Positions 12,623 to 41,428 of a stretch of 64,000 bases of DNA are shown here, in pieces. Position 1 is the stretch's first letter. Every line of letters starts with the position of its first letter. The notes beneath the pieces are model-generated. The model was not told the origin of the DNA and ran no database searches. It saw only the letters and a list, made by a program, of their open reading frames with translations. The translations under genes were made by a program, and so were the position numbers. The stretch lies in sequence record OR805295.1; one strand, given 5' to 3'.

Positions 12623-13847
12623 ATGGTCTCTGTTAATATACCGTTAATTGTATCTAATAAAATATATAAAATGGAATTTGAATATGGCAAGGATGATGTG
12701 TTATATTTGTGTATGTATAGTGACAATATTACATATCTACATAATATAATAGTCAATACAGAATTTTCTATGCTTTTTGTTCAATGTATGGGTAAAACTA
12801 TACCACTAGAATCGATATTATATATCCAGTCAAATATAAAAACAATAAGTGTGACTGATGATTATGGCTGTATAACCCTACATAACGATACATTTTGTTT
12901 ATGTACTGGATATTTTCAGGAAAAAGTTAAATTTTTTGCAGATTAAATATGAATGAACAAATTATATTATGTTTTCAAGCATGCATTAATAAATTTGCCT
13001 ACTTAGGAAACCCAAAAATAAGATTATTTAGAATCGGTAAAAGTGTCAAGATATCTGCACGGAATTATAATAATATGGATATAGGTTCGTTTGACAGTAA
13101 TTTGAAATTTTTATTATATATCGATAGTATCCAAGATATTGGAATATATGATGAAAATTTTATATTTTATATATCAATAAATTCAGACGAAATATCATTT
13201 TTGGGTTCTACAGGTACAGCACAAGTAGATACTGAACTTGGAATTACTATATTCTTTACCCGCACCAAAACATAATCCTAAATTATGATATTCATTGCAC
13301 AGCGACTATTATATAACATAACATATAATAAAAATACAATACTGTTCGGTTGTTTTAATAGTGGATATTTTTTAATTAATAGAAGAAGTGGTATTGGATT
13401 CTTATTTACAGATATATGTATGAAACGAATAAAATGCATTTATTTCATATTATATATTTCGCGTAATACTAATACTATAGGCAAAGATGCAATCTATATT
13501 AAAGATTTAGAACTACTCAGAGCAATGCACATACTTCGATGAATATAAATTTAATACTGCTACTTCAAAGATGTACGTCTGTAATAGGAGGATTCCAACG
13601 CGGCGGCGCAACACTTATCCATATTTATAGTGATTTTAATTTATCTGCTATAATGACGTTATACAAAAGAAGATGCAAATGCATTGTATTTACTGACATT
13701 TTGTTTAACGACATTAAAGACGGTTCTATAGATATCATTATCTATATAAGTAAGAATGCAAACCTAATACACGATAAATTTGCCTACATAGACACATCTG
13801 TTACAGATGAATCTTCTGTTCCTTTACACGATATGACAGGAATATGA
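12623..13847 (+). other. Four tandem ORFs of the ILxLQ small-protein family (12623-12946, 12949-13275, 13285-13542, 13539-13847)
   Basis: NLILLLQRCTSVI, IFIAQRLLYNI, ILYIQSNIKTI, IIYISKNANLI. Confidence 0.6.
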
Positions 13848-14329
13848 ATAATCCTATATATAATTTTATACTTGCAAGACGAATATGCAAACGGTATAGA
13901 ATAAAATTCAATCCTTTTGTAAAATTAGATACAGGAAGTTTACAAATAGATAACGCAGATAAAATAACAGTTAGCGTAAATGTATTTAATAGTAATTTTA
14001 TACCTATATTTTGGCACGAAATAGGGCATTATATTCATCATACATTAGTTAATTATAAAATTTATTTAGATTACTATACTCCTATTTGTCCTACACACGG
14101 GTATCTTTTATATAATAAGACACAAGATTTTTATAAATGTCTTTATTCCGAAATGTTTGCTAGTAGATTTGCACTAAAGGTATGCGGAGCAAAACATAAG
14201 AAATACCTCATAAAATGTTTTCACACATACACTTCTGCTGCATTTAAAACCAACATCGCCAGCCAATCCAAATTTACAAGATTTGTAGATTTTGTAGAAA
14301 AACTTTCTAGAAAATTAGATAGATATTAA
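13844..14329 (+). CDS. Zincin-like (HExxH) metallopeptidase
   Basis: FWHEIGHYIH followed by YSEMFASRFA. Confidence 0.6.
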   Translation: MNNPIYNFILARRICKRYRIKFNPFVKLDTGSLQIDNADKITVSVNVFNSNFIPIFWHEIGHYIHHTLVNYKIYLDYYTPICPTHGYLLYNKTQDFYKCLYSEMFASRFALKVCGAKHKKYLIKCFHTYTSAAFKTNIASQSKFTRFVDFVEKLSRKLDRY

Positions 14330-14665
14330 TATATGAACACTTATGATTATATAAGACAGAATAACGACAAAATAGTTACATTTGAAACCATATTACATAT
14401 AAGCAGTAGAAGTAGAGTAATAAGACTGCATTACAATTTTAGTTATATTTTACAACGAATGTCTCTAATTCTACCAGATAAACGCGGGAACCTGGTAATT
14501 AAATACTTTTATTACCGAAGTGTATGAAATATATTTCGTGTATATTATATAACTTTCTGTTCACTACTTATATAAAAGTACATTCCAAAAATATTGTAAA
14601 TATAGTATAGTTTTCATATAAAAGTATGCGTATAATTTGCACATATAACGCAATAGCACAGCAAC

Positions 14666-14800
14666 AAACAAAACGTAATAAAAAAATGTTGCAATAGCTT
14701 AAAAGTTTTAGTATAATAAGCACATAACAACGCAATACAGTTTACAAACAAAACGTAATAAAAAATGTTGCAATAGCTTAAAAGTTTTAGTATAATAAGC
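14666..14800 (+). promoter_or_regulatory. Tandemly duplicated sigma70 promoter of the tRNA cluster
   Basis: Two copies 79 bp apart of A-tract + TTGCAA-17-TATAAT (14689-14717, 14768-14796). Confidence 0.85.
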
Positions 14801-15168: not shown

Positions 15169-15244
<76 letters not shown>

Positions 15245-15525: not shown

Positions 15526-16387
15526 AACTCCTACAAAAGGAACATATTATAGTATGTTCCTTTTTTATTATGATATTTTTATTATGAATGAAATAATGCA
15601 TATATCTGCCAACACATACGTAATAGAATATCGCGTATTAAACAAGTTAGTAGTCACTATAAAAAATAATAGATCTTTTACATTATGGGTACATTTTGAT
15701 ATCGGTACATTTTCTATGGCATGGAAATACAATGCAATATAGAATTAAAAAATGAAATACATTATTAATTTACAATACTCAACAGAAGTAATATATATGC
15801 CGTGTTTCAACATAATATCGTTATGCGATAATAGATCTGTTACTATCCTTTCTATTACTATGATATTTAAGATAAGATACTATTTGCATCCGATGTTCCG
15901 TTATATTCTATAATACATAATATTTTTATTGTAACAAATACCAGAAGTGCTTAGATAATATATAGCAATTCTGTTTATTATCGATATTGCGGTATACTTA
16001 GTATTTCTTATTAACCGTATTACATAGAATAAAGAATGGAAAAAATTTTAACTATTTCACATAAAACATTAATATGTGAACTGTCGTTATTAAACTGGTC
16101 GAAATCCATAGTTTGTGCATATTCTGGCGAAATAATATGGTATGTTCGGTTGCATAAGAAATGTTATGTAGTACAGCTAAGATGATAATGAACTGTATTT
16201 TTTCCTATTCGTACTATTTAGAACGCATCGTATGTCATGCAAAAATCTACAAAGGGTTTGTAGTCAGTAAAAATACTTTTTGTGAGAAATCCGTAATAGC
16301 TTTATACTTAATAAATAGTGGTAGTTATTTTCATAAATGTTATGTCGATCATTACTTAATTGTATAGATATATTTTAATAAAAATAG

Positions 16388-16416
16388 TTGACCGAACAAA
16401 CAAAACAGTATATAAT
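16388..16416 (+). promoter_or_regulatory. sigma70 promoter for tRNA-Arg
   Basis: TTGACC-17-TATAAT. Confidence 0.85.
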
Positions 16417-16467
16417 GTTACGCATATAAAGCATTATTACAAAGCTATCATTAGTTGCACAAGATAT

Positions 16468-16544
16468 GCGCTCGTAGCTCAGCTGGATAGAGCATCCGCC
16501 TTCTAAGCGGATGGTCGGGGGTTCGAATCCCTCCGGGCGCGCCA
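16468..16544 (+). tRNA. tRNA-Arg(UCU)
   Basis: TCCGC-CT-TCT-AA-GCGGA, CCA. Confidence 0.95.
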
Positions 16545-17083
16545 ATTTTAAAGAGTGTTGTGTTATGCAAACAATAAGATTTGACATAAGACTTCTTCGT
16601 TATAGTATGAAACAAGGTTTCTGTTGCATAGGTAAAGATATATTTGAAGTGTGCAGAAAAACTCGGATCAGTCCAGGTCAGCTAAACTTACGAAAAAATT
16701 ATATAGGACGAGTATTAATCGGAATTGATTCGAACTACAATCTGCACAATACCTGTTTAGTAGGCTGGACTCGCTATAAAAATATTATAGTATAAAAATT
16801 TATATTAATAATATGAATAGATGCAAAGAACATCTACAATACAGAACAATCAAAAAGCATACATTAACTTGTAGGAAATGCAAAGAGTTATCGTTACAAA
16901 TAAAATTATTTTGGCTTCAACAACAAGCATTCAGTATTAGAACCGATACTAGCGGAATATACATATTCGATATTAAATATAATTCTATTTACGTATACTC
17001 TGTAGCTTGGTATAATACAGAATTATACGGTAAAGGGAAAATAATTTTAGAATAAACATGTATATATAAGAGTACCTCAAATA

Positions 17084-17416
17084 ATGAATAATTATTCTAA
17101 TGATACAGATATTCTAAAATGGATAAAGCGTAACAATAGAAAAAATGCACGTCTAATTTCATATATAGACGGAATATATAATATTGTTTATTTCGATGGC
17201 GGAAAAGCAAGAGTTGGCATAGTAAAAGACAATATGCACTGCAGATACGGAATACATAGTCGTGGATCTATGTATTCGAAAGATATAATGAGCCTGTGGC
17301 AATCTAGTACAGGTTCGTGTTCGCCCGATGATGTAAAGATTATGCAAGATTATCTAGACGATAAATGCATACTTCCGGAATTTGATTTTTCTCAGATTAA
17401 AAATTTAAAATGGTAA
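17084..17416 (+). CDS. Hypothetical protein
   Basis: 110 aa ORF with typical protein composition. Confidence 0.7.
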   Translation: MNNYSNDTDILKWIKRNNRKNARLISYIDGIYNIVYFDGGKARVGIVKDNMHCRYGIHSRGSMYSKDIMSLWQSSTGSCSPDDVKIMQDYLDDKCILPEFDFSQIKNLKW

Positions 17417-17439
17417 ATAATATAACAATATAGTTTTAT

Positions 17440-17516
17440 CGCAGGGTATGCAAGAGGTCTAAGCAGAAAGGCTCATAACCTTTTTATCGTGGGTTCGAAT
17501 CCCACCCCTGCAACCA
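17440..17516 (+). tRNA. Initiator tRNA-fMet(CAU)
   Basis: C1:A72 mismatch, purine11:pyrimidine24, CAT anticodon, CCA. Confidence 0.88.
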
Positions 17517-17525
17517 GTTTTATAT

Positions 17526-17602
17526 CTAGGCATAGCTCAAGTAGGTAGAGCACTTGCTTTGGGAGCAAGAGGTTGGGGATTCGAGGTCTCCTGCCTAGAC
17601 CA
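17526..17602 (+). tRNA. tRNA-Pro(UGG)
   Basis: CTTGC-TT-TGG-GA-GCAAG, C1:G72, CCA. Confidence 0.92.
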
Positions 17603-17611
17603 ATTTACTAT

Positions 17612-17684
17612 GCAGTCCTAGCTCAATTGGTAGAGCACTGTCCTTCCAAGTCAGATGTTACGGGTTCGAGTCCCGTGGGCTGCT
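17612..17684 (+). tRNA. tRNA-Gly(UCC), no encoded CCA
   Basis: Anticodon TCC, U73; followed by CAA; U:U mismatch in anticodon stem. Confidence 0.8.
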
Positions 17685-18424
17685 CAATATTCTAATATAA
17701 TTGATTGGTATATCTAATCGATGATTCATGTAGTGGATAAATATGGAAGTATAGTTATACCATCTAATATAACGGTGCTGGAAATACAGGCATACACAAC
17801 AGAGTTATTGTATGTAAGAAAATCTCATTGTTTATGTTTATACATTCCTAATATAGGAAATTATGCTTTATGGTTTTTAGACAGATAGGATAAAAATATA
17901 AATTGTTCTGTTTAAGGAACCAACATTAAATGGCAGGTTGCATATTTAGGCTCGATTTGTCTATTTTTCGTGAAAATGTATATAGTATTTCTAGGTTGTC
18001 TTATACAAAATCTATATGTGTTTCAATAACAACTAAACCGACAAGCAATAGAAAACAATTAGAAATATATGTTGTAGATAAAACAACTGATTTTTTAGTT
18101 GCATGCAAATATTTTTAGTTTATCTATTTTGACTTGCCTTTAAAATAAATAACCATTATATATTTGATATAATAACTATTCTAAATAGAAATAAAACCAT
18201 AAATACACATAATAACGGTGTGGATTTATGGAAAACATATTTAGGATATCTATTAATGCTAACGAAGGTATTATACGAATATCCCCTACTTACTTTTTTA
18301 ATGGTGTTTTTTATTCAAAGCATTTGAATATTTTTATAATAGATCCCGACGGATATTTAATAAGAAAAATATATACTTGTAGTACATTCTTATAATGATT
18401 TCTTTTAAATATACAAAATAACAT

Positions 18425-18453
18425 TTGACACAAGTATAATTATTTCGTATAAT
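18425..18453 (+). promoter_or_regulatory. Consensus sigma70 promoter
   Basis: TTGACA-17-TATAAT. Confidence 0.9.
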
Positions 18454-18484
18454 AAGTGCATAAAATATCAAAAGAGAATTTTAA

Positions 18485-18844
18485 ATGATTTCCAAAATTC
18501 AAATTGTATACGGAATATATCTTCCTACTGCTGATGCAAAAATTATATACGAAGACTCGGAATACGAATCTAATAAAATAAATAAAAATATTAGATTATT
18601 TGCAAATGATGCATATTTAGAAGATAAGATTTTAGAAAATAAGGAATTCGAAGATAATCCCTATGTTCCGCACTTTTATGGTATTTTTTGTAAAGAATTC
18701 GATAATGACCAAAGTGCATACTTATATAATGTTCCCAAATCTTTTATAGATGAATATAATAATGTAGCTCCAGCTATTTTGGCTAGACTCGGTTATTTAG
18801 ATAGAGTTGCAGGAAAACAACATTGTAGAATAATCTACGAATAG
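18485..18844 (+). CDS. Hypothetical protein
   Basis: 119 aa ORF downstream of consensus promoter. Confidence 0.75.
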   Translation: MISKIQIVYGIYLPTADAKIIYEDSEYESNKINKNIRLFANDAYLEDKILENKEFEDNPYVPHFYGIFCKEFDNDQSAYLYNVPKSFIDEYNNVAPAILARLGYLDRVAGKQHCRIIYE

Positions 18845-18858
18845 AATTAACTAGTTTT

Positions 18859-18948
18859 GGAGAGGTGATAGAGTCTGGTTTATTATACTAGTCTTGAAAA
18901 CTAGCGGATCGAAAGGTCCCGTGGGTTCGAATCCCACCCTCTCCGCCA
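18859..18948 (+). tRNA. tRNA-Ser(UGA)
   Basis: CTAGT-CT-TGA-AA-ACTAG, long variable arm, G73, CCA. Confidence 0.95.
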
Positions 18949-18953
18949 AATAT

Positions 18954-19043
18954 AGATACTTGACCGAGTGGCTTAAGGTGCTTCCCTGCTAAGGAAGTGA
19001 GTTTGAAAAAGCTCCGTAGGTTCGAATCCTACAGTATCTGCCA
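18954..19043 (+). tRNA. tRNA-Ser(GCU)
   Basis: CTTCC-CT-GCT-AA-GGAAG, long variable arm, CCA. Confidence 0.95.
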
Positions 19044-19403
19044 ACACATAAGCGGAACAATTGTTCCGCTTTTTATTAACCTAATAAATGTTATTTTATA
19101 ATGTTACTCATTATAAAACACAATAACAAAAATATCTTATAATACTAGTTTTGAAATTTCTAAAATAATTTGCAATGATATTTGTTTTAGTTATTATATA
19201 GAAAAAGATTACTAGACAAAGTATTATTGCAGATGTCAAATGCAATCAACTAATATTATTATCTAATTTAGCAAAATCAGAAAATACTCATTTAAATCAG
19301 TATAGTATTACATTCTGGTATTTTCCATTAAAACAATAAATTTACAATTTTATTAATACACCGAGTATAGTATATTAAATATAAATCACACGAGGTCACA
19401 GTT

Positions 19404-19619
19404 ATGAACAAACATTTCGATATAATTGCCGAACTTGAATATCCTACTTATACTGTACAAGTAAGGAAATATCGCGACGATGGTAGATATGAGGTTGGTC
19501 AACAACCCAACGAGGGCGAGTATGTTGCACGCCACGAAAATTGCACTGCCGACGACGCCATCCGCGTACTATCTCACTACTGCACAGCAGCCCTTTATAA
19601 AATAAAGAAACAATACTAA
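19404..19619 (+). CDS. Hypothetical protein
   Basis: GAGG RBS, 71 aa. Confidence 0.75.
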   Translation: MNKHFDIIAELEYPTYTVQVRKYRDDGRYEVGQQPNEGEYVARHENCTADDAIRVLSHYCTAALYKIKKQY

Positions 19620-20263
19620 TTAAATGAGAATATTTGTTATGTGTACAGATGCCGGTCCTTCACCGGCATTTTGGCAAGAACTAAACTGCGGAATAACCTA
19701 TGACACTAAAGATGCGTGTGGCGATTTCAGTGTTAATGACATATTCAATGTATTAGTAAAAAAAGTAAACATAGTGTTATGTGCGAATGTGTCCAACTAC
19801 GAGATATTAAGCTATTCTAGGTTCTTAAAATCATGCACATAACTAACCTATGTAAACTATGTTCCATGTATCAATATCTCGAAATCATCATGGAAAATCT
19901 GCAGGACAAAACAACATCAATTATAATTAGATTCGAAGTACCGACAGAGTATGGTAATATTTCGTCTTTCATATTTCATTTTAAAGTACATAAGGAAACA
20001 ACTAAAATAACTAATAATCTAAGTGATTATTCTAATAGAATAAATCATTTACATAACAGTTATATTAGATGGATTAATAACCCAAGAATGAAACTTTATA
20101 AATGATAAAAATATTTAAAATACAGATGCATTTAGAACATATAGTATATGATCATTTAGCTATATATACTATAGATTCATCATCATCAGCCATCGTTTTT
20201 ATTAATTTAAATAATCCTAAACCCATATGGAACACTCATTATAAACATTAAAGAGAATAATGA

Positions 20264-20614
20264 ATGAACTTTGAGTATGTATTTAAATTAATCAATCTAC
20301 TAAAAGTTTCTAGTTCGATAGAATGTATTTCGTTATCTAAATTTTATAACGACTACGGCGTATATATAGAATACAAAAATAATAAAAAACTGCATCGCTT
20401 GTTAGACCATAACATTACTAGCCCAATCAACATTATAGAAGAAGAACTAGAACGCATAATTAGAATTTCTGCATCTAATGTGAAAATATCACCAGTGTAC
20501 AATCGTGCTACCCAAAAAGAAATATTAAATATGTGGATAAATTATACATTAATTTGGCGAAGAACATTTTATTCTAGTGCATATACAATGCAACCGTATT
20601 TGAAGGTAAAATAA
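20264..20614 (+). CDS. Hypothetical protein
   Basis: 116 aa ORF. Confidence 0.6.
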   Translation: MNFEYVFKLINLLKVSSSIECISLSKFYNDYGVYIEYKNNKKLHRLLDHNITSPINIIEEELERIIRISASNVKISPVYNRATQKEILNMWINYTLIWRRTFYSSAYTMQPYLKVK

Positions 20615-21005
20615 ATGACAATAGACGAATTTCTAGAACAATTAGACTGTGCATGTACTGATGGCAATTGCATATTTCGCCCATCGCATCGGAAAGGAAT
20701 GGTAACTAACGGTGGTTGTAAGTGTATAATAGACAGAAATAAACACACTAATGTACTGAGGTATATTAATTTCTTAAAATCTAAAATAAAATGATAGATT
20801 ACATCTTTAAATTAAGTTCCTATTGTTTAATTTTTATAGATTCATCACGCCATTATGGTGTACACTACGATCTGGCAGAATATTTTTCAGACGGTTCTAT
20901 ATGGTATAAATGGTCTTATGAGACCACTTCGCACAACGATACTCAGTATAATAAAGGAAAATACACAAAAAGTTTTATATACTTAATGGAAGGAAAATAT
21001 TCAGC

Positions 21006-21524
21006 ATGAAAGGGTATGATTTAATTAAAGAATATTATGGTACCCGGGTTGCTAAACGTTCCGGGATTCCGTTAATGAACCATATAGATGAAGGTCTAAA
21101 AATTTTAGATACAATAAATTCTTCATACGAAGTAAAAGAAGCATTTTGTTTACATCCTTTGCTCCAAAATAACGAAGAATTTGAAAATAACTATGATTTA
21201 GTAGTAAGCACAGGCGGCCTGGTAACAAAAAGTATTCTTCTTGCAATGGAATATAGACACAAAGCAAATACATATTTGTGTAAAAAAGAAACAGATCATT
21301 GGACAGTTGAATATGCATCTAAAAAAATAGGTCATATTATTCATCCTGTAAAAGAAATGCTAATAGCAGATAAGGTTCAAAATTTCAAAGATTTTAAAAT
21401 ATATCATAAAGACACCCACAAAAGATCTCATCAGTTATCTAAATATTTTAAAAATTGGCTAACAATCTTAGAAATATCTGACGTCGACGCTAAAGATTTA
21501 GAACAAGTGTGTTATAAAGATTAA
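21006..21524 (+). CDS. HD-domain-like protein resembling degenerate (p)ppGpp hydrolases
   Basis: KRSGIPLMNH...AFCLHP...MLIADKVQN. Confidence 0.55.
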   Translation: MKGYDLIKEYYGTRVAKRSGIPLMNHIDEGLKILDTINSSYEVKEAFCLHPLLQNNEEFENNYDLVVSTGGLVTKSILLAMEYRHKANTYLCKKETDHWTVEYASKKIGHIIHPVKEMLIADKVQNFKDFKIYHKDTHKRSHQLSKYFKNWLTILEISDVDAKDLEQVCYKD

Positions 21525-21585
21525 CACACATTAGATTTATAAATGCAATGCCACTAAATATCTTTAATTATGTAGGAGATATATT

Positions 21586-22224: not shown

Positions 22225-22262
22225 TAAAACATTGCCCGCTAATGCGGGCAATGTTTTATTGT
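22224..22262. terminator. Bidirectional terminator
   Basis: AATAAAACATTGCCCGC-taat-GCGGGCAATGTTTTATT. Confidence 0.85.
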
Positions 22263-22330
22263 ATTTTTATTTTTCTTATGCTATTATACAAATAATAAAT
22301 AATGGACGTTTAATAACAAGGAAATGTTTT

Positions 22331-23381: not shown

Positions 23382-23531
23382 GTGGATAATATCAAATCGT
23401 GCAAATGCGCACATGATTTCCAGGACAGTGTGTACGGCAAAGGTAATCGTGTGCATAACGTGTTTACTAAGGGATATCGTTGCACCGTTTGCGGTAAAGA
23501 AGTTATTACTTCTTCCACTGGCAAGAAGTAA
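23382..23531 (+). CDS. Small zinc-ribbon protein not in the ORF track
   Basis: GTG start after GAGG; CKCAHDFQDSVYGKGNRVHN...RCTVCG; TAGATT-17-TATACT promoter; terminator near 23539. Confidence 0.8.
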   Translation: MDNIKSCKCAHDFQDSVYGKGNRVHNVFTKGYRCTVCGKEVITSSTGKK

Positions 23532-30900: not shown

Positions 30901-32556
30901 ATGTAAATTATAACTTTTATAGTAATCCATTTAGTTTGTGGAATAGGGCAGTATTTATAGCATCTAAACAATGCGGGTACATAGCATTCACTGATAACCG
31001 GGTGCGTATATTAACTGATAAAAAAATAATGTGGTATTATAATTATCTATAAGGTATAGATCGAAAAATGGTATATAAAATACCGAACGACAAGTGTATG
31101 TTGTTAATATTTCTGAGTAGTATAGCTGATACTATATCTATAGAAATCAGTTTTAGAAAAAGAATTAGAAAATGTTTGTACACACTAAAAATATACAAAG
31201 GTGATAACAATTGCATATTTATAAATGGCGTACTATTATTTAAAAAAGTTATATGTAACGATATGATAATTCCTATTTTGATACAATCAGTCACAAGATC
31301 AATATCAATGCATAACGACTTCTTAGAAGTATTTTCTAACAAATATTATTTGACGTTATTTAGAAAAATGACATAGTCTTAAATGGGCAAAAATGCATGA
31401 TTGTTATACTTCTTTCACACTTTACACATGAACTAAATGCACAGTTTAATGAATTAGAACTTACTGTGTATGGTAATAGATTAGCGCAAATATATCCAAC
31501 AGCATTTATAGATACTAACATTCTATGGCATTATATGAGTAAACCTAATTTCTTACTATTTTATATTTCTAATAATGCAAAAACGATAAAATTAAACCAT
31601 TCGCCCCGAATATTATTATATAACTCTCCCATACCTCACTATATTTAAAAAGATAAGTAGGTGAACTATCATTTAAACAGTTGTTGTACAGAAACTCTTT
31701 TAATGAGCAGGTTAATGTCCATCTAAACCCTATGTGCAACCTACCATTTATTATATCAAGTAATTCCCACAAACTAATCTACGGACAGTATTTTAACAAT
31801 ACAAGAGGTCCAGGCATATACATTGCTAATATAAATGGATTTGTGTTTCTATACTCAGTTGTTACTATTTCTAATTTTCAAATATGTTTTAGTATGCTTA
31901 ACGAAATAGATCCTTTGTATTTGCAATACAAATGCGATTCAATAAAAACAATAAACACACTTATGTATTATAGACTAAATGTCAATTCATTACTTAATAC
32001 AATGTTATGTAAAGAATATTATGAATTTAATACTTGAATTATTAAGAAACACTAGTAAAATCATACCGCTTGATGGTCTAAATGCTGCTAGATTTATTCT
32101 TGTAAATACCCATTATATAAAAATAGCATCTTTTTGTTTATCATTTTCTACATGGACCTGCCAGACATTTTTAAGTATAAACCAGTTTCAAATGTCAGAA
32201 TCTACGTTAGTTATCATATCTAATAAAATAAAGAAGATCAAAAGAGTAAAAAAATCATACGCTTTAGTTTTTGACGAATCATATATTCTGTTGAAAATCA
32301 AATGATAATACATATCTCACATTTAACACATATAATAAATGCATATTCTAAATATATAATCGTTACTAATAAAGCTAATGAAATTATACTTTGCAATTAC
32401 ATATATAACCAAACTAAAATTTACATTAGCAAATTATTACTAAATATCGATTTAATCTGTTATATTCAACATAACACAAAAACTATTAGTTATCCCATTG
32501 TACATAGCCATTTTCTAGCGTATCCATATCTTTGCAATAATGCCTTGGTTGTATAA
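27929..32556 (+). other. Array of ~15 two-unit ILxLQ family ORFs (85-115 aa)
   Basis: MDIILFISNNT, MTKLILTISINT, MKYDFILHMSNNT, MNIIINIQAST...ILLLQHTT, MNLILELLRNT, LICYIQHNT. Confidence 0.65.
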
Positions 32557-32558
32557 TT

Positions 32559-32846
32559 ATGGATTTTATTTTCCTACTACAACATAACACTTCTATTATA
32601 TTATTTAATAATATATCATATGGTAGTATAGAATTATACACAAAAGACGAAGTTCCAGTATTAGACATAGAAATATCAAATTCTATGTACATATATCAAG
32701 GTAATTTTAATGACAAAACTGCAATACTCCATCTACAGCAAAATACACACCAGATACAAATAGATATAGATATTATAAAAATGAGAAACATGTACTATAA
32801 AGACATTTATTATATTGTATTACATGGATTATATGGATTATATTAA
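32559..32846 (+). CDS. ILxLQ family protein, recent duplicate A
   Basis: MDFIFLLQHNT...AILHLQQNT. Confidence 0.75.
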   Translation: MDFIFLLQHNTSIILFNNISYGSIELYTKDEVPVLDIEISNSMYIYQGNFNDKTAILHLQQNTHQIQIDIDIIKMRNMYYKDIYYIVLHGLYGLY

Positions 32847-32912
32847 ACTTATCTCCGCAGAAGTAAATCAAATATATCCATATCTTGTCAACAATACTTT
32901 GGTTATATAATT

Positions 32913-33194
32913 ATGGATTTTATTTTCCTACTACAACATAACACTTCTATTATATTATATCGTAATAGTATTATAGAATTATACACAGAAGACGAAATGC
33001 CAGTAATAGACATAGATATAACAAATTCTATGTTCATATATCTAGGTATTTTTAATGACAAAACTGCAATACTCTATCTACAACAAAATACACACACGAT
33101 ACATAAAGAATCATCAAATTCTTATTATATGATAAGAATGAGAAATATGTACTATAAAAACATTTATTATATTATAACACATGGATTATATTAA
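32913..33194 (+). CDS. ILxLQ family protein, recent duplicate B
   Basis: Near-identical to 32559-32846. Confidence 0.75.
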   Translation: MDFIFLLQHNTSIILYRNSIIELYTEDEMPVIDIDITNSMFIYLGIFNDKTAILYLQQNTHTIHKESSNSYYMIRMRNMYYKNIYYIITHGLY

Positions 33195-34022
33195 ACTTAT
33201 CTCTTCAGAAGTAAATCAAATTAAAAAATCCACCCACCCCGGTGGCACCCGCAACGGCTTAACACTATATAACGTACATGACCAACCTATAATAGAAATA
33301 AAGATCCAAAAAATAATATCCCGTGCATATGTGCGTGCAAACTACGATAAGTTGTGTAATGAAATCTGCATTCTTCATATGCAAAGTCAAACAACTTTAA
33401 TATCTACCACACGGAACTCACTAGTAATCTTCACTTCCCACTATATAGTTCACTCTATCATATGAACCTAATCCCCGCACTGCAAAATAAAACTAGATAT
33501 ATATCCCAATTTGATACTACTTATCGTTTAATTAACTCAGATAGAAAATGCTTTTATCTTATAACACGCAAGAACAAAAAGACCACAGTAGACATAGACT
33601 ATAATATCTTCAATGATATTTTCGGTATATTACATTTACAGTCTAAAACACATATACTAAGACGTTCATATAACGTAATACAAGTACATGATGTATATTC
33701 TAATTTAACACATTTTGCCATAGCTCGGCAATAACCATAAATGAAATTTATTATAACATTACAATCATACACAACTACAATACAGTTTCTAACTAATGAT
33801 TTTATATTATATTCTGATAGAAATAGATTATTAGAATTAGGTATATACAATAACAAATTCAACTGTTACATACATATCAATAATTTTAATAATAACAATA
33901 TAATCATGTGTTATCTTCAGCATATAATTTATACAATACACATTCATCCCTTTGTTTTATCGATGTGTAATAGTAATTGGTTATCAGTTAATACAAAATG
34001 TTATTCAAGAAGACTTTACTAA
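33181..34022 (+). other. Three ILxLQ family ORFs (33181-33465, 33462-33734, 33741-34022)
   Basis: CILHMQSQT, GILHLQSKT, MKFIITLQSYT. Confidence 0.7.
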
Positions 34023-34063
34023 AGCAATGAAGATGAATGATAGAAATCACTACACTATAACTA

Positions 34064-34519
34064 ATGAGTGATAATACTCTAATAGATAGAAACTATAGTG
34101 TACAAATAATGAGTGATAATACTAATAGAAGCTATAGTATACAAATAATGAGTGATACCAATAGATGGTGAATAATGAGTGATACTGAGTGATACTAATA
34201 AGATAGTGATAGTGTACAAATAATGAGTGAATTATATAGTACATATTTCGGTGAATACTGATATAATATCAATAGATAGCTATAGTGTACAAATAATGAA
34301 TGATAATACTAATAGATAGTGATACTGATATAATATCAATAGATAGCTATAGTGTACAAATAATGAATGATAATACTAATAGATAGTGATACTGACAGAT
34401 AGCTATAGTGTACAAATAATGAGTGATAATACTGATAGATACTAATACTAATACTGATACTAATAGATAGCTATAGTGTACAAATAATGATTGAATTATG
34501 TAGTACATATTTCGGTGAA
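34064..34519. repeat. Iteron-like AT-rich direct repeat array
   Basis: Seven copies of ATAGT(G/A)TACAAATAATGA; perfect 67-bp tandem 34255-34388. Confidence 0.9.
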
Positions 34520-34896
34520 CCCTAACATCACCAAAGAAAGAAGGACCAAAATTTTGGAAATCTTGCTCTATAGGTCCCATTCATTTTCTTCCCAGTTACA
34601 TTTATATTCTTTCCATTTCTAACCATTTTTATAGATTTTTTTTGGAAAAATCCGTTTTCTGCTATATAGGGACCTTTTTATAAAATATAAGTTCTTTTTC
34701 AATAAAAAATATTTTTTTTGAAAATTTCCAATTCTTGCTATATAGGCCGGTTTCATTATATATACCCGTTTGCATAACATATACGGAATATAGTATGCTA
34801 TACGTATATAAACCGTGACTCTAGACAACTCACTTACTGTACGCTCGTTAATATAATTCCATTTCGTAGTATAACGTATATACAGGAAAGCTAGGT

Positions 34897-37484
34897 ATGG
34901 ATTTGATACTATTTCTTCAACATAATACTGTAGAGATGGACTATAGTGAATGGTACGTTCGTCTTAACAACAAGAATGGAAATAATATAGCTATGATTAC
35001 AGGTAACGGTATTAGACTGTATTATAGAAATATCAATTGCTTACTTGGTATTCTTCATTTACAATACTGTAATTATAATTTTTTCAAGTATATGGGCAAT
35101 TATATTTCTTTTACATTTGTTGAAAATAATAGGTTTGTACATGAAATATATGTTGATTTGAAATAATATATGGATTTCATACTATTACTTCAATCTCATT
35201 GCAATGAGATTGTATATACCAATCAAATCATTGATATGCTCAATGCGCATAATAGGCAGTTCGTATATGGAATTACGTTGCCTATGGGAAGAAAACATGT
35301 GTCATATAATGCATATTGTTTGTATAATAATTTATGTGATGTGATAGGGTTATTGCATATGCAATCTATACTATCGTTAATAGAAGTTAAACATTTAAAA
35401 ACATTTTCTGGTAAAACAGATATTATTGTTAATATGGTGTTTGTTAACGGTTATCTTCAACATGCTATATTCTAATAGTTGTGTCTAATATATGGACTTA
35501 ATATTATTATTTCAGTCTCGTTGTTGTAAGATTTGGTATTCAGATTATATTATAGATATGATCGACTATAGTGATTATACTATAGTATCGTTATTACGCC
35601 CGCCGAATGGGCGTATGTATGCCTATTGTTCGTGTAATAGTATAAACAACGAAACTAGTATAATGCATTTGCAGAATAGCATACATTCATTACAAATAAG
35701 TTATAGTACCCGTTTTATAATGTGTCGTATGACTAATGTGTATGAAGATCTAATTCAATATATTAGTATACTTTAGTAATGTATTTTATCTTGTTTATAC
35801 AGAGATTGTGTTGTTCGATTAGAAGGGCTTCACATGGATTCGATATTTTTGATACAAATGAAGTAGCATATTCATTAATAGATCATAATGGTTTCAGTAT
35901 GAAACATTTCGTTTCATACTCTGTTATAAATGATGTAATAGGAATTATACATTTACAAGTGCATACAAATAAGTTATATTTTCTTCATGAAAAACATCAA
36001 ATGGATATGATTTGTTTTCTAGATAGTAAAGGCGGTCATTTTTTTAGTTTGTAGAGGACGGAATTTGTGTTATTAATATTAATGCTTCAGCGTAATGTCG
36101 AATGGATTCTTTATACTGATTGTGAAATTCGACTTGTTCTGCCCGATTATAACACGTTATATCGTTTTCTAAATCAGAAAAAGAACATTAATGGGTATCT
36201 AAATTGCCATGCTAGTAATGACATTGTAAGTACATTTTATTTACAGTACAATTGCGATACTATATCATTTAGTAGATTTGATGAATTTATGATACTAAAC
36301 CACAATGGCGTAACAATTTATGGCTGGTGACTAGCATGGATATTATATTGATTCTTAGTAATGAAGTTATAAGAATACAAGGTTGTTTTTATGATATAGA
36401 AACTTTACAAATAAGGTTCTTCAATAAATACGACTCAATATATTTTTGTAATAAAATGGGAGGATTTGTTAACTATAAAACATTTCCCAATGAACTATTA
36501 TGTATAATTCATTTGCAGCAGAATACACATAGGTTGATAACACACAGTAAATGTATATTTTTTGATAGTGTAGATTTTATTTCTATTCACTGGGAGACTT
36601 TGTTTGACACAAACGAATATGTATAATGATATGAATTATATATTACTAATTAGTAACCAGTCTAAATATATTTCGTTGAAGGCACTTGGATTAACTGTAA
36701 AAACACGTGAACCAAGGTTAACTCATTATATTATATTTTAAATATGAACGAAGAATATGATATATTATATTTGTCTAACAATACTATGCAAATAACATTT
36801 CGTTTTTCAGTATATTGTTTTTATGATAAAACTCGTAGTATTATATATTGTCAATAAGACAGAAATATAAATGGATTTAATATTAACACTTCAACATAAA
36901 ACTGTGCTAATATCACAGTTTAGTGCATTATTTGTATTTCAAAATATAAACAGTGATACTATATTTTGTTTGGATATAGGTAAACATGTATATTATTTTG
37001 AAATAATATTCAGGTTATATAATAACAAGAATGGCATGGTGTATTTGCAACATGCCATTAATTCTATTAAGTTTACCCTTAGTTTATATTATCATACAAT
37101 TCATGGATATTCTAGTATGCCATCTATATATATGTATGATAAAAAATATGCTATTGTACACGTACCATATGTTAGGAATACTTAATGGATCTTATATTAT
37201 ACATTCAGTACAGTGCTCATAAAATAGAAACTGTTTATAAATCATATCTATTTTATAGTAATAACTATTCACTTTATTACAGACTGTCTGTATATAAGAG
37301 ATTATTGGTACCATCAGGTAGTAAATCATATGCAAGGGCTTCGGCTGAATATTCTGCTATTACAGACAAAATAGGAATGATACACCTACAATCGAAAACA
37401 CACGTAATATTATTTATTAATGACGGTATGTGCATTCACGACAAATCGTATCAAACACTCCATTATATTATACCAAAGTTATAA
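34897..37484 (+). other. Eight two-unit ILxLQ family ORFs (34897, 35170, 35492, 35779, 36067, 36327, 36871, 37185)
   Basis: Mostly MD(L/F)IL-x-(L/F/I)Q starts plus internal G(I/L/M)(L/I)H(L/M)Q. Confidence 0.8.
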
Positions 37485-37716
37485 TGTTCATAAGTTTTAT
37501 TCCGCCTGTTGCAATGTTGATACGACTACAATCAAATCTACATATTATCTGTTTTGATTCTATTTATGATAGTATAGTGTTTTGTGATAAAGACGGTGAC
37601 GAAATACATTGCTGCTTATGGTAGCGTGTTTGCATTTAACGCAAAAACATGTTATACAGTATTGTTTGTTGAGTATTTTGACATTGTTGTTTCTAAAAAT
37701 CTTTTAAAGGATTAAT

Positions 37717-40700
37717 ATGCATAATATATTTAAATTATCATATTGTACAAATATGTTTAAATTTAAAGTATTATGGGATCAAAAAGTATACCTATGCTCG
37801 TTTATGTCATTGCGGTATACTACCCTATATATTTCTGCAGGTCGTATCAGATAAATGGTAACAAATATATTAGAATTAATGTATGTATGTCACCATACAT
37901 ATAATATAACAACTAACGGCTACTATAACATTATCTTCTTAAATAAAGATAATAATATTATCTTTGTTTTGTATTAAAACAAATGGGAATATTTCTCTTA
38001 TCACGCAATACTTGCTACATTTGTGTTATACATGTCAGACGTATTGTATACAAGATTAAAATGTATGACAGACATGGCAATTATGTGTTTACAATTAATG
38101 TTATCTAAGAACATATTAAATTATATAGAATTTGGTTGTATGTAATACTGTTTAATAATGACAACAGATATTGATAAAATAACATACATTTCATTTAACT
38201 CATGCTATATATCAGTTAATCGTTTTAGTGTTATTATATATTATGAGTACGGTAGATTGATTTTATATGATGATACCCCCGGGCTTATATAAGAACGTAT
38301 TCTACATACAGTATAATGTGCGTCATATCAGCATATATTATTTTGATGCATGTGAATGTAATATATTACAAGTAGAATGCAATAATTTTCTTACTCTAAC
38401 ATATAAATTAAATGAAAAAACCAATAAGTAATGTGGTTGAATTATCGTTTAATACGCACTGGTTTAATACCAATTATATAGCTAGTGCTCACTGTTTAAT
38501 ACTTTATAATGCGTCGTCATATCCTATACATTATGTTCGTTTACACACAAACAGGCGTTAACACTTATGTTGCCGGTATCAATTCATAATATAGTTTGTA
38601 TTCAACACTATCTTAATAGATGGTATACTAGAATATCCACAACAGGTATTAATGTGTATTCAGATTCATATGTTAGAATTAGAATAAATGTTCATAAATA
38701 AAAATATTATAAATTATGATATATTGCAGGTATCTTCATGCGCACATAGAATAGATTCATCGCTATGTAGCACATATCTATTGGCATGCATTTATAATAG
38801 TAATGAAAAAATTATTATAATTAGTGTTGCATATCTAAGATGAATGGTATAAAAGATATAATAGAATTTTCATCGCATGCATACGAAATATGTGCAAATA
38901 CAGCAAGACTTAGAGATATAGTATACTACTCGATACTCATAAAAGCAAAAGACGGTCTTGCATTTTATATGGTAGACTCGTTTGCATATATAACATGACC
39001 AGTATCCTTGAATGTTCTTACAACACTTCTAATATTGTGTTTCGTTTTTGTAAAAACAGTGACATTTTAGTTGTGAACTTTCTAAACAAAAATGCTGACA
39101 TACATTTCATTGTAATAATTAGATACAAATAAACATATCGTTAATTACTAATACATAGGAGAGTAATAAATGAATAGAGAAGCAAAGAAAAATGTTTCTA
39201 TATTTGTTATTCAGAATCATACTTTTAGAGTTCATGTTGTGCGATATGATCCTGCGAGAATTTCAATATATCTCTCACTTGTGCATAATTGCGTTGCATC
39301 TTAAGAACTATATCTGTATAATGTAGGTTACATTTACATGTATAGGATTATCTTTCATATAATATATGCTTATTAACTATACGACATGTATTGAATTACT
39401 TTATAGTATTGTATGATTCGTAAAAATATAGTTCTAATATCACATAACACGTCAAAAATAATATTAGAAAGAAGAACAAGTAAAGTATTACGTGTTTCTA
39501 TGTTTAAATCAATTGGAAAATACTACTACCATTATTATACGGCGTGTGGAAATATATAATGCAAGATCATCATTTCACTACACTGTTGTATATGTCTAAT
39601 CGTGCAGATAGAATAAAGATTTTTCGACAGCCTTCCTGTCTTATTGTATATATTAAGTCAGGTATGTTATATATTAATAAACAATTTTTAAAATGTTAGA
39701 ATATATAGATACTCTCAAATATAATTACATTTTAACTGTATGCAGCGGTGTAGAGTCTATATCATTCGAATCATTTACTAGATCAGTAATATCAGTTTCC
39801 ATAATATATAATAATATTACTATCTTTCCATGTCAAACCACACGAACTATACTGTATGGTGTATAATCTTATTTTTATTTCTTTTAATGTTTCTTTAATT
39901 AGTTTTTCTATTTTTAATAAAACATTTGAAGTTTATATTTATGGAAAAATGTTATTGGTAATTTATTATACAGGACTGCATATATGTTAGATATATTGCT
40001 ACGGTTCCAACGCAGAGTGGATACAATTAAGGTGGAGTTAATATGGCGTCACTTGCATTTTTATGAAAAAGCCGGCGAGGAGTTAGAGTTATTTCATATT
40101 ATATTTCTGCCGCCCGATCACCGAAGTATTAATTAACAAAAACAAGTTGTATTTTTCGGCATAAAAATTTATGAATAAAGATACAAACAAAGAATCACCT
40201 ATTATTAAAGAATTATATTTTATATTAAGATTGTAAGTAAAATAAAATACTTTTAGAATCTAAAACTAAAATGATCGATTGGGTATTTAAATTGTCTGCT
40301 AGTTGCTACGAAATAGACGGACAACACAGTGAGTCAATAAGAATATATAATTCATATTGTCTTTTAGGAACTATACAATGTTATTGTGCTCAGTTAAAAA
40401 TAAATTTATATAAATTTTAATATTGTGGGAAGAATTCTTTTAAATAGGCATACTATATGAATGATCTATTACACTACCAACTCACATTATGTTCCATATC
40501 TTTGCAGAAAGCTCTTTTTAAGTCAGGCAATGTGTATTACATTCTAATTGAACGTAACGACAGCGGTAGGTATTCCCGAGATGTAAAAATACTTAAATGA
40601 TATGCGTATATTTGTAATATCACAAAATTGTATGACTATCAGACTTTTTTATCATACATATTTCATTAAAGATGTAAATTATGATTCAATTTGTGTATTA

Positions 40701-41120
40701 TATAAAACGAATAGTAGAATTGTAATACATCCGAGTTTTACAGTAGATGAATATATTCGATCTGTCTTATAATTCTTCATTTATTTTGATGAAATCGAAT
40801 AGATTATACATTAGTAACTATAATTATTCTGTAGGGGCTACATATGTATTACCTGCAATAACAAAATATATACATCAAACATTCTATGTAAACGCTGCAA
40901 TATATAGATTTTTAGATACAGGTATACTAGTATGAAATTCAATATATTTAAATTGCAAAGAGGATGTCACTTTATAGATTGTCATTTTTATGACATTCTT
41001 AGATTTTCAAAACCTACATATTTTCGAGATGCTGATAGAATAACTATATTTTCATTAATAGGTACTAATAGTATCAGAATTTACGAGGATATGTATAAAG
41101 GATATGCACAAACCATATGA
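37717..41120 (+). other. Head-to-tail array of single-unit micro-ORFs (40-62 aa)
   Basis: Hand-translated: 37717-37854, 37855-37977, 37983-38108, 38158-38292, 38270-38431, 38412-38561, 38567-38701, 38688-38843, 38840-38998, 38995-39132, 39170-39304, 39559-39699, 39693-39866, 39984-40136, 40271-40420, 40457-40600, 40602-40772, plus track ORFs 40747 and 40932. Confidence 0.7.
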
Positions 41121-41428
41121 TTGAAATATTAATATTTTCGAGTGCTAGTGATTATATTAGTATAAGACATGATATGGCACGGCTATATAATCTTAATGGT
41201 GTTAGTGAATTAATATTTGTATCAAAACCATACAAATATATTATATTAACTAATTTAAAAAATCATATAGGTATATTCTGTATTTCAAATATAATAAGTG
41301 AAAGGGTGATGGGAGATATTACTAGTAACGAATGTTGGGCTTATCCTTGGCCTCCAGATACTGGCATAGATGTATATATTGATTTCCTGTATAAAAATGA
41401 TGAGCTTTCTACTAAACACACAATATAA
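41117..41428 (+). CDS. Two-unit ILxLQ family protein
   Basis: EILIFSSASDYI...GIFCISNII. Confidence 0.6.
   Translation: MIEILIFSSASDYISIRHDMARLYNLNGVSELIFVSKPYKYIILTNLKNHIGIFCISNIISERVMGDITSNECWAYPWPPDTGIDVYIDFLYKNDELSTKHTI

Follow-up and report, generated by a model that had tools for sequence, protein, structure and literature searches.

A large family of small paralogous proteins built from a repeated unit in the Pseudomonas jumbo phage Paride

The pre-early region of T5, gp37-gp60 of SPO1 and the 'Tre' genes of Kayvirus/Twort-like phages are early, host-takeover clusters that lie in long terminal repeats. The MGF110/360/505 families of ASFV and the terminal families of poxviruses are known as 'genomic accordions', and their members modulate host range and immunity. 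Hua et al. 2017 (PMC5646251) reported that the jumbo phages G and 121Q carry tandem arrays with over 30 similar genes, and this was repeated in a 2026 review (PMC13282480). In this study, we analyzed a 64,000-nt stretch (hereafter, the window) of Pseudomonas phage Paride, a PA5oct-like jumbo phage, and found one large paralogous family, previously unrecognised, that is made of a repeated unit of ~45-50 aa.

The arrays of phages G and 121Q resemble that of Paride in being long, co-oriented, paralogous and of unknown function in a jumbo myovirus, and they have been read as genome growth by tandem duplication. However, their genes are described as 'very similar', whereas the Paride paralogues are old (median pairwise identity 21%, with only one pair at 68%), and those arrays have not been reported to show a unit structure, half-size genes or a location at the boundary of a terminal repeat. 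The family profile was run on positions 1-100,000 of 121Q, a stretch that takes in the tRNA genes and small genes of this phage but in which the array itself was not located, and gave no match there. The T5, SPO1 and Kayvirus clusters share with the Paride array many small, co-oriented, homologue-less genes at what would be a genome end, on the strand that the host RNA polymerase reads early. On the other hand, those clusters consist of unrelated genes inside the repeat, while the Paride array is a single paralogous family of which, as placed by alignment to PA5oct, only the part at 34.9-41.4 kb lies inside and about half lies just outside. Moreover, in the published PA5oct report, the highly transcribed early set is gp34-gp105 and does not include the family genes.

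The likeness to the ASFV and poxvirus families is one of genome dynamics only. Both would have paralogues near the genome ends, a copy number that shifts from one close strain to the next, selection that is weak or diversifying, and members that are dispensable one by one, but there is no relationship between the viruses, their hosts or their proteins, and the Paride proteins are far smaller. Small phage anti-defence proteins (anti-CRISPR, Ocr-like) are also small, fast-evolving, taxonomically restricted and without detectable homologues; to our knowledge, however, known anti-defence genes are not arranged as arrays of ~50 paralogues.

About 50 ORFs carry at least one unit, and the 74 units were all found on the plus strand. 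A single family supplies more than 30 tandem genes in one orientation (Table 1). The preliminary description had counted more than 30 co-directional ORFs of 85-115 aa. The common orientation held and the membership rose, but only the ~27-30 two-unit ORFs have that size, and the rest (~20) carry a single unit and measure 40-62 aa. The array had also been made out to be larger and more continuous than it is, having been drawn as continuous and as a third of the window. The family ORFs sum to 13,023 nt (~13 kb), which is ~20% of the window, and most of the 16-28 kb region is non-family, with 12 tRNA genes, a GDSL hydrolase, a DksA/TraR zinc finger, a PP-loop TilS-like protein and an M23-like peptidase. 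The main block harbors a young duplicate pair (32559-32846 and 32913-33194, 68% identical), and two degenerate single units lie at 36604-36857, inside the block within the repeat. The plus strand of 28.0-37.7 kb holds 26 ORFs of 80 aa or more and the minus strand 2, compared with 0.36 in dinucleotide shuffles (maximum 2). At 37.6-41.1 kb, 24 ORFs of at least 38 aa were found against a shuffle mean of 4.7.

Table 1. Features of the array and its relatives in the window of phage Paride
Feature	Coordinates	Strand	Evidence and remarks
Outlying cluster of four family ORFs (12623-12946, 12949-13275, 13285-13542, 13539-13847)	12623..13847	+	Unit profile matches at 12809, 13138, 13405, 13536 and 13689; full-length profile for 13285 and 13539
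Two short members directly after the first tRNA block (15554-15742, 15752-15913)	15554..15913	+	Unit matches 15548-15688 (E = 7.9e-9) and 15752-15859 (E = 4.6e-7)
Single-unit relatives scattered among unrelated genes (16036-16185, 16813-17055, 20102-20251, 23101-23322, 25372-25719, 25933-26265)	16036..26265	+	Lenient iterated unit profile only, E 3e-4 to 2e-8; weaker assignments
Main block of ~21 tightly packed ORFs, 83-118 aa, mostly two-unit	27929..34022	+	Upstream of the terminal-repeat boundary; full-length and unit profiles
Non-coding gap dividing the array	34023..34896	.	33-67-nt repeat, seven copies, at 34038-34512
Two-unit ORF block within the terminal repeat	34897..37484	+	Best-conserved members; PA5oct gp2-gp10; top profile scores of the family
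~22 single-unit ORFs, 40-62 aa, motif at the start of each	37484..41120	+	Start-to-start spacing ~125-175 nt; lenient unit matches
Last array member, 103 aa, two motif copies	41117..41428	+	Unit match 41105-41203
Isolated single-unit relative beyond the interval first described	44940..45155	+	Unit match 44961-45089, E = 5.8e-7
Isolated single-unit relative beyond the interval first described	60431..60580	+	Unit match 60431-60529, E = 5.6e-6

The plus strand of 12623-41428 has 54 occurrences of the motif hydrophobic-hydrophobic-x-hydrophobic-(Q/S)-x-x-(T/C)-x-x-I, compared with 13 on the minus strand, and the rest of the window has 12 on its plus strand. The motif stands, as previously noticed, both at the start of proteins (MDLILFLQHNT, ORF at 34897) and in mid-protein (GILHLQSKT, ORF at 33462). 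The iterated full-length profile gathered 24 ORFs but none from the minus strand and none of the shuffled and reversed decoys, which were four times as numerous, and the supposed mutual homology is thus significant. The unit profile found 57 units with strict criteria, and lenient iteration raised this to 74, with at most 1-2 matches in the controls (reversed sequence, shuffled sequence and minus strand). The N- and C-terminal halves align with each other (hhalign E = 7.8e-5), and the profile of the single-unit ORFs at 37484..41120 aligns with the N-unit profile (E = 5e-5, reversed control 0.055). The best partner of a gene is its neighbor in 6 of 32 cases against 1.9 by chance (P = 0.02). The array is the product of old tandem duplications, and as the paralogues are old, with their median identity of 21%, it is not a recently generated library.

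That the family was unrecognised agreed with our searches. A profile search of 1.84 billion representatives revealed no homologue beyond the genus Wroclawvirus, PHROGs gave 0 matches, Pfam and NCBIfam gave isolated single-member matches only (E 0.006 or worse), and the best match among the PDB sequences was not significant (E = 0.098). A profile match to a homing-endonuclease-associated protein (P0021; E 5.9e-5 spread over four stretches) was regarded as a chance resemblance, as that protein, whose repeat is all-helical and made of another unit, shares ELILLLQQK with the motif and nothing beyond.

AlphaFold2 gave two paralogues the same helix-plus-strands topology (pLDDT 74 and 75); in the second model, the pLDDT was 83-95 over the first unit and 51-56, which is low confidence, over the second. 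Each unit is predicted to have an N-terminal helix bearing the motif hydrophobics and Q/S, while T/C-x-x-I would begin the first of three or four beta strands. Foldseek showed no significant structural neighbor for either model (best E 0.13-0.32, TM <=0.36), and the structural comparison proposed earlier has yielded a common topology but no significant match. The commonest top Foldseek matches for both models were VOC-fold proteins (glyoxalase/fosfomycin-resistance), whose domains are likewise built of paired alpha/beta modules, and the family might consist of very small members of this fold binding a small molecule or metal. We consider this extremely improbable because every match is insignificant (E >=0.13), the paired beta-alpha-beta-beta-beta modules do not superpose significantly, the alignment has no conserved His or Glu metal ligands, and Pfam gave no significant match.

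Structural or mutually assembling proteins would be another explanation, for example single units pairing as hetero-dimers that build an intracellular or virion-internal structure and do not target the host. The two-unit proteins resemble internal pseudo-dimers, ~20 members are half-size, and the family is hydrophobic compared with the neighboring genes (GRAVY +0.17 vs -0.35). However, the PA5oct record gives the label 'structural protein / ESI-MS/MS' to gp38 and to none of gp2-gp33, and structural proteins are normally strongly conserved, which this family is not. This role seems quite improbable to us.

The motif recurs start to start every 110-190 nt (commonly 120-165) on one strand only, and true DNA repeats are present in the adjacent gap. 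It could therefore be a DNA- or RNA-level element, such as a repeated promoter, a packaging site, a regulatory site or an RNA motif, with incidental ORFs. This is already contradicted by the codons, and we give it hardly any credence. The third codon positions within the motif hold information at the background level only, the conserved Ser (AGY 7, TCN 15) and Leu (both TTR and CTN) are drawn from non-interconvertible codon families, and the motif is invariably in an open frame. Tandem Repeats Finder detected no DNA repeat within the array. Promoter-like sites were only slightly above shuffles (166 vs 141.6, sd 10), and consensus scans are uninformative at such AT content.

Comparison with four sister phages, among them MIJ3 and Cassandra, indicated that selection on the protein keeps the ORFs open and preserves the motif. 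Stop-creating changes in the family ORFs were 4 against 19.7 expected in MIJ3 (P < 0.0005) and 5 against 17.4 in Cassandra, and synonymous changes were in excess in both comparisons (P = 0.001-0.005). At the six core motif positions, there were 23 non-synonymous and 23 synonymous changes between orthologues, compared with 197 and 72 at the variable positions (Fisher P = 0.003); non-synonymous changes are thus depleted 2.7-fold at an equal synonymous rate, and the Q/S position showed 0 non-synonymous and 9 synonymous changes. The protein-level selection claimed from synonymous codon variation was borne out by these counts. All 8 tested ORFs of the 34897..37484 block were intact in PA5oct.

Outside the core motif, the positions evolve almost neutrally, with members differing in rate (heterogeneity P ~0.01), and this describes better what had been called hypervariable. 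The pN/pS of the family was 0.59-0.60, in contrast to 0.00-0.04 in ten neighboring genes at similar pS, and ~0.76 against a mutation-spectrum null. It is significantly below neutral and not near 1. The single-unit ORFs at 37484..41120 showed values of 0.25-0.43 with an excess of synonymous changes, and the member 36336-36626 is clearly under purifying selection (7-9 synonymous vs 1-7 non-synonymous). The young duplicate pair had a pN/pS of 2.1, with so few synonymous changes that P = 0.02 under neutrality. The in-frame pN/pS of the family was not clearly below that of the two other frames, and the amino-acid composition was near the prediction from nucleotide composition alone (r = 0.94); therefore, most positions may be unconstrained. 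The substitutions do not show the adenine-directed pattern of a diversity-generating retroelement target, as their spectrum is ordinary (64-66% transitions, no excess at A), and all substitution types are present in the young pair.

Single units and whole genes are still being gained and lost. The unit count ranges from 67 to 76 among the sister phages, the comparison for which the preliminary description had called, and one copy of the young pair is missing in MIJ3 and Cassandra. The turnover events include a gene-sized duplication of 354 nt and a unit-sized indel of ~118 nt at 37500. Divergence from the sister phages is highest, 7-8%, at 31-34.5 kb.

PA5oct has a direct terminal repeat of 39,080 bp (PMC7318152), and its position 1, the start of this repeat, aligns at Paride 34529. 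Paride 34897-41428 aligns to PA5oct 408-7050 within the repeat, and 12623-34022 is outside, just upstream of the boundary as located via PA5oct. As placed by this alignment, the array would flank the left boundary of a long direct terminal repeat, that is, a physical genome end. Three TTTTGGAAA...TGCTATATAGG repeats lie at ~34560-34746, after the alignment point. The GenBank record of Paride labels 34126-34490 'CRISPR'. The repeats do not fit this annotation, as the copies are 60-100% identical, their spacing varies between 39 and 114 nt, and repetition extends to the 'spacers'.

The Shine-Dalgarno strength of the family is barely over random, which agreed with the earlier remark that few members have a clear ribosome-binding site. 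The mean energy of the SD/anti-SD duplex was -1.9 kcal/mol, compared with -4.2 for the remaining genes in the window and -1.0 for random positions. At 38 of 57 gene junctions, the genes overlap or lie at most 10 nt apart, and this tight packing with overlapping stop and start codons suggests that translational coupling replaces strong ribosome-binding sites. All family members are on the strand that PA5oct transcribes early. In the PA5oct report, gp34-gp105 are the highly transcribed early genes of the repeat at 5 min, and gp2-gp33, which correspond to the family, are absent from that list (PMC7318152). On the same source, this block (gp34 onwards) begins just downstream of the last array member.

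The array may also be mostly ballast. Repeated unequal recombination by the terminal-repeat boundary would have amplified one ancestral small gene, and the copies would be nearly neutral passengers with a small protein contribution. Their ORFs would stay open mainly because Rho-dependent polarity spares RNA that is translated, or because any copy that breaks is deleted before long. The pN/pS, alike in alternative frames, the composition close to mutational expectation, the weak Shine-Dalgarno sites, the degenerate units in gaps and the run of half-size ORFs are in line with this, as are the highest divergence and recombination at the boundary and the absence of the family part of the repeat from the highly transcribed early list of the PA5oct report. 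However, neutral sequence with a GC content of 27%, in which stops make up ~8% of random codons, would not retain ORF and motif at 21% paralogue identity. In addition, the motif positions are constrained between orthologues, and certain members, such as 36336-36626, are clearly under purifying selection. We presume that this explanation is rather unlikely, although it deserves to be weighed.

Taken together, the comparisons show that the array is a lineage-restricted multigene family of small proteins under birth-and-death evolution. Our preferred reading, held with moderate confidence, is that these are accessory host-interaction proteins. The conserved motif residues would form the hydrophobic core of a small alpha+beta scaffold, of which the two-unit form may be an internal pseudo-dimer, and the nearly unconstrained strands and loops would be its surface. 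Produced in infection, with translational coupling presumably serving instead of strong ribosome-binding sites, the proteins would be individually dispensable accessory factors, each binding a host or defence component, and redundancy among the copies could account for the weak constraint on each. Counting against a binding role, the searches that we ran yielded neither a partner nor a homologue with a known function, nor any structural neighbor of significance. None of our results bears out the earlier suggestion of decoys or inhibitors of host defences, or that of a reservoir of variants.

A bolder form of the host-interaction reading, which we regard as improbable, is that the ~75 units constitute a combinatorial repertoire. 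Fused pseudo-dimers and ~20 half-size proteins, pairing mutually or with other members, would present many surfaces on one core, titrate or block diverse immune sensors or host factors of P. aeruginosa, and be replenished at the genome end as units are gained, lost and recombined. If this is true, the array would be to a phage what the terminal multigene families are to large eukaryotic DNA viruses.

[quoted passage not shown] An iterated full-length profile, seeded with 13 obvious members and run on ORFs of at least 35 aa from both strands, converged at 24 ORFs with no minus-strand match and none among shuffled and reversed decoys, which were supplied in four-fold excess. An alignment of the N-terminal with the C-terminal halves extended across the whole unit of about 45–50 aa, beyond the motif (N-half against C-half profile, hhalign E = 7.8e-5). 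A unit profile searched against stop-to-stop segments in six frames detected 57 units at E < 0.01, all on the plus strand and without decoy matches; at E < 0.1 it gave 60 plus-strand, two minus-strand, one reversed and no shuffled matches. Iteration at E < 0.1 gave two minus-strand matches in its first rounds and ended with 74 units and at most one match per control class in the last round. The ORFs of 40–62 aa at 37.5–41.1 kb each begin with the motif, and their joint profile matched the N-unit profile at E = 5e-5 (reversed control, 0.055). Dinucleotide shuffles gave on average 0.36 (maximum 2) plus-strand ORFs of at least 80 aa at 28.0–37.7 kb, where 26 are present, and 4.7 (maximum 12) ORFs of at least 38 aa at 37.6–41.1 kb, where 24 are present. 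The mutual homology and the repeated unit of about 45–55 aa put forward in the preliminary description were thus borne out, but its extent was overstated: most of 16–28 kb is unrelated to the family, 27–30 rather than more than 30 ORFs have 85–115 aa, among about 50 unit-bearing ORFs, and the member ORFs sum to 13.0 kb, one fifth of the window and not a third. Two isolated relatives lie outside 12623–41428 (table).

The information of the motif was located in codon positions 1 and 2, with position 3 at background. The first set for this count had been picked by protein pattern, and the check was repeated with profile-defined units, in which the conserved Ile used ATA, ATT and ATC in genome-wide proportions, the conserved Leu used both TTR and CTN codons, and the conserved Ser used AGY (7) and TCN (15). 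Tandem Repeats Finder found no DNA repeat inside the array. A DNA-level repeat was rejected on these three grounds, and therefore the conservation acts on the protein, as had been proposed from the synonymous variation; a function of the array as DNA is a much less likely explanation.

The region was aligned with those of the sister phages MIJ3, Cassandra, Deifobo and PA5oct, which are 92–99% identical. The Nei–Gojobori pN/pS of 34 family ORFs was 0.59–0.60 (0.39 against PA5oct, 8 ORFs) and that of the small ORFs 0.25–0.43, and ten neighbouring non-family genes with a similar pS of about 0.06 gave 0.00–0.04. The family substitutions read in the two other frames gave 0.42–0.98, and therefore a sharper null was built, in which each observed substitution was relocated at random among those sites of its gene set that carry the same base. 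Against MIJ3, 130 synonymous changes were observed where the null predicts 103 ± 8 (P = 0.001), and 4 stop-creating changes where it predicts 19.7 (P < 0.0005); against Cassandra, the values were 116 with 94 expected (P = 0.005) and 5 with 17.4 expected (P = 0.0005). These results agreed with the selection claimed in the preliminary description, and the null implies an omega of about 0.76 in the family, 0.4–0.6 in the small ORFs and about 0.07 in the neighbouring genes. Non-synonymous and synonymous changes numbered 23 each at the six core motif positions (349 codons) and 197 and 72 at the low-information positions (1099 codons), a 2.7-fold lower non-synonymous rate in the core with an equal synonymous rate (Fisher P = 0.003). 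The Q/S position had no non-synonymous and nine synonymous changes, and in the strands the inward-facing hydrophobic residues changed less than the positions between them. The constraint is uneven among members (heterogeneity P about 0.01), some being clearly conserved (36336–36626, 35779–36054) and others showing mostly protein-level change (27929–28595, 34897–35166, 36067–36330). The sole young duplicate pair (32559, 32913) had a pN/pS of 2.1, and a synonymous count this low has P = 0.02 under neutrality. Amino-acid composition followed nucleotide composition (r = 0.94 in the family, 0.84 in the neighbours), and the family proteins are hydrophobic with scarce charged residues. The ORFs and the fold core are maintained, and most remaining positions are nearly free.

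The AlphaFold2 model of 35170–35472, built on an alignment of 22 paralogues (pLDDT 74, pTM 0.54), has a helix (3–10) and four strands (13–16, 20–24, 30–36, 46–50), followed by a second helix (57–67) and two strands (70–77, 83–90). The model of 33462–33731 (34 sequences; pLDDT 75, pTM 0.59) has the identical order of elements and is confident in the first unit (pLDDT 83–95) and poor in the second (51–56). In both, the motif hydrophobics and Q/S lie on the helix, and T/C-x-x-I begins the first strand. Foldseek gave no significant match, the lowest E values being 0.32 and 0.13 for the two models in PDB and 0.07 in BFVD; proteins of the VOC fold recurred among its insignificant top matches with TM of 0.36 or less, and a VOC-like ligand-binding role is much less likely. 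Pfam, PHROGs, NCBIfam and PDB sequence profiles had no match to the family, in line with its earlier designation as unrecognised. HMMER with the two-unit profile against 1.84 billion cluster representatives returned 23 matches, 21 of which are Wroclawvirus paralogues, one cluster each; the other two, P0021 and P0023, were dismissed as repeat proteins with only a short common string. A tblastn search with one member recovered orthologues only, missing even the paralogues, and is therefore useless for remote relatives. As far as current databases reach, the family is restricted to Wroclawvirus and to this part of the genome.

The window corresponds to record positions 124001–188000 (32000–38000 is 100% identical to 156000–162000 of OR805295.1) and is 92–96% identical to PA5oct, MIJ3, Cassandra, Deifobo and other phages of Wroclawvirus, the one genus of Arenbergviridae. 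All ORFs inside 12623–41428 are annotated as 'hypothetical protein'. Position 1 of the PA5oct record aligns at 34529, and the direct terminal repeat of PA5oct, which starts at this position, was estimated at 39,080 bp (PMC7318152). This suggests that 12623–41428 straddles a physical genome end; 12.6–34.0 kb would then form the right-hand end of the unique region, and the terminal repeat would begin at 34.5 kb. The irregular tandem repeat in the gap between the gene blocks is a likely candidate site of terminase recognition or repeat generation; its annotation as 'CRISPR' in the Paride and Deifobo records was rejected because the repeat is irregular. Two weak unit-profile matches also fall within it. 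At the TTTTGGAAA...(T)TGCTATATAGG copies, TGCTATATA is similar to an extended −10 element, and the copies may serve as early promoters in tandem at the genome end or as binding sites for proteins.

Features in and around the family array of phage Paride (window coordinates)
Feature	Position	Remarks
161-aa protein, HExxH motif (WHEIGH)	13844-14329	between two family clusters
Twelve tRNA genes	14833-19043	four groups, interleaved with small ORFs
GDSL-family hydrolase	21586-22224	PF13472, at its cutoff
DksA/TraR-type zinc-finger protein	22331-22561	PF01258, E = 1.3e-10
PP-loop TilS-like gene	24652-25263	near tRNA genes
Irregular tandem repeat, core CTATAGTGTACAAATAATGAGTGATAATACT	34038-34512	seven copies of 33-67 nt, spacing 39-114 nt; stops exactly at PA5oct position 1 (34529)
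GAATTAT(A/G)TAGTACATATTTCGGTGAA	34228 and 34494	second copy abuts terminal-repeat start
TTTTGGAAA...(T)TGCTATATAGG	34560-34746	three copies, ~80-90 nt apart; inside terminal repeat, upstream of first repeat-borne family gene (34897)
Isolated family relative	44940-45155	unit-profile match, outside 12623-41428
Isolated family relative	60431-60580	unit-profile match, outside 12623-41428
GC-rich islands	42000-44300, 50000-52300, 61700-64000	44-53% GC; genome about 30% GC

The paralogues are of old origin, with a pairwise identity of 21% at the median and 68% at the maximum. The best partner of a member was its array neighbour in 6 of 32 cases, with 1.9 expected by chance (P = 0.02), and identity declines with distance along the array. 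A 354-nt gene duplication is present in Paride and Deifobo and absent from MIJ3 and Cassandra. At 37500, about 118 extra nucleotides in PA5oct and Cassandra convert an ORF with one unit into a gene with two (PA5oct gp11). Copy number also differs among the related phages, with 74 units in Paride, 76 in Deifobo, 70 in Cassandra and 67 in MIJ3 over the homologous 34 kb; turnover of the family is ongoing. The divergence from MIJ3 and Cassandra is highest (7–8%) at 31–34.5 kb, directly upstream of the boundary, with flanks at 1–2%. Deifobo is near-identical to Paride up to 33 kb and differs by 2–5% from 34 kb on. Such a switch points to a breakpoint of recombination at the boundary of the repeat and suggests that the terminal-repeat part was exchanged between lineages. 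Targeted mutagenesis of the DGR type was rejected, as the substitution spectrum is ordinary and has no adenine bias.

The mean Shine–Dalgarno duplex energy of the family was −1.9 kcal/mol, between the −1.0 of random positions and the −4.2 of other genes, which confirmed the scarcity of clear ribosome-binding sites noted earlier. Of 57 gene junctions, 21 overlap and 17 are within 10 nt, a tight packing compatible with translational coupling. Consensus scans for sigma-70 promoters and terminators were uninformative at 27–30% GC. [quoted passage not shown] The gp34–gp105 block begins directly downstream of the last family gene, and the expression of the family is possibly low. None of gp2–gp33 bears the virion mass-spectrometry label in the PA5oct record, and a structural role is much less likely. 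The main rival explanation is that the array is mostly ballast, amplified by unequal recombination at the boundary; weak signals for translation, rates close to neutral and the silence of the PA5oct paper on gp2–gp33 expression would all fit it. However, pure ballast would not be expected to retain ORF and motif over the long term at 21% identity, or to show constraint specific to the motif.

Taken together, our data establish that this multigene family is real, codes for protein and is restricted to the genus. Its unit is duplicated internally, and the family undergoes birth-and-death evolution at the terminal-repeat boundary with selection limited to the ORF and the fold core. We presume that the members would be individually dispensable accessory proteins targeting host or defence components; their specificity would come from the variable surface, and redundancy would relax the constraint on each copy. 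Hua et al. noted tandem arrays of more than 30 similar genes in the jumbo phages G and 121Q (PMC5646251), which is restated in a 2026 review (PMC13282480). The Paride array is the same kind of feature, but the family itself is undescribed: the PA5oct, MIJ3 and Paride papers do not mention it, and the words 'paralog' and 'duplicat' are absent from them. In contrast to the G and 121Q arrays, that of Paride is old and its members have diverged; no sequence relationship to those arrays was detected among the cluster representatives or in the first 100 kb of 121Q, where the best matches of three family profiles were no better than reversed decoys. Early-gene clusters in terminal repeats are found in T5, SPO1 and Kayvirus, and terminal multigene families in ASFV and poxviruses. 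The Paride array may be likened to the former and, in its dynamics, to the latter, by analogy and not by membership.

The tRNA set consists of three Met(CAT), two Leu(TAA), two Ser, and one each of Asn, Thr, Arg(TCT), Pro and Gly. The TilS-like protein may act on a CAT-anticodon tRNA, as already discussed for MIJ3 (PMC6892783), and the DksA-like factor could bear on the dependence of Paride on host stress physiology. An M23-like peptidase is also encoded within 16–28 kb. The 161-aa protein scored below threshold against PF07737, a zinc-metalloprotease domain family (20.2 bits, cutoff 27.4), and is probably a small zincin-like protease. The ORFs 43475–44179 and 61748–62215 have Ala/Lys/Glu-rich tails and are paralogous, with 48% identity across 61 aa; mass spectrometry identifies gp38, the PA5oct homologue of the first, as a virion protein. 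The GC-rich islands may represent genes of the early region that were acquired horizontally. In the experimental evolution of Paride, changes were listed at record positions 150,220 and 155,004 (PMC10761892 supplement), which would be window 26,220 and 31,004 by GenBank coordinates. One shifts the reading frame of a hypothetical gene close to its end (PMC10761892), and 26,220 fits the end of ORF 25933–26265, a weak relative of the family. The other appeared in the two lines in parallel and adds an ATG upstream of a hypothetical gene (PMC10761892); position 31,004 lacks the described ATA ATG context in GenBank numbering, and its mapping is uncertain.

Among the jumbo phages, Paride and PA5oct serve as models and as candidates for therapy, and Paride stands out by its killing of dormant P. 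aeruginosa. One uncharacterised family, annotated solely as 'hypothetical protein', takes up about 13 kb beside the genome end, and its recognition makes one testable object of some fifty anonymous ORFs, in which whole blocks can be deleted and one structure would cover all members. The array is a clear bacterial-virus case of a birth-and-death multigene family at a terminal-repeat boundary, where selection on the fold core is measurable and other positions mostly drift. Should the members be host-interaction factors, new binders of Pseudomonas proteins could be drawn from one compact array; should they be dispensable, the array would offer a safe site for shortening or loading the genome in phage engineering.
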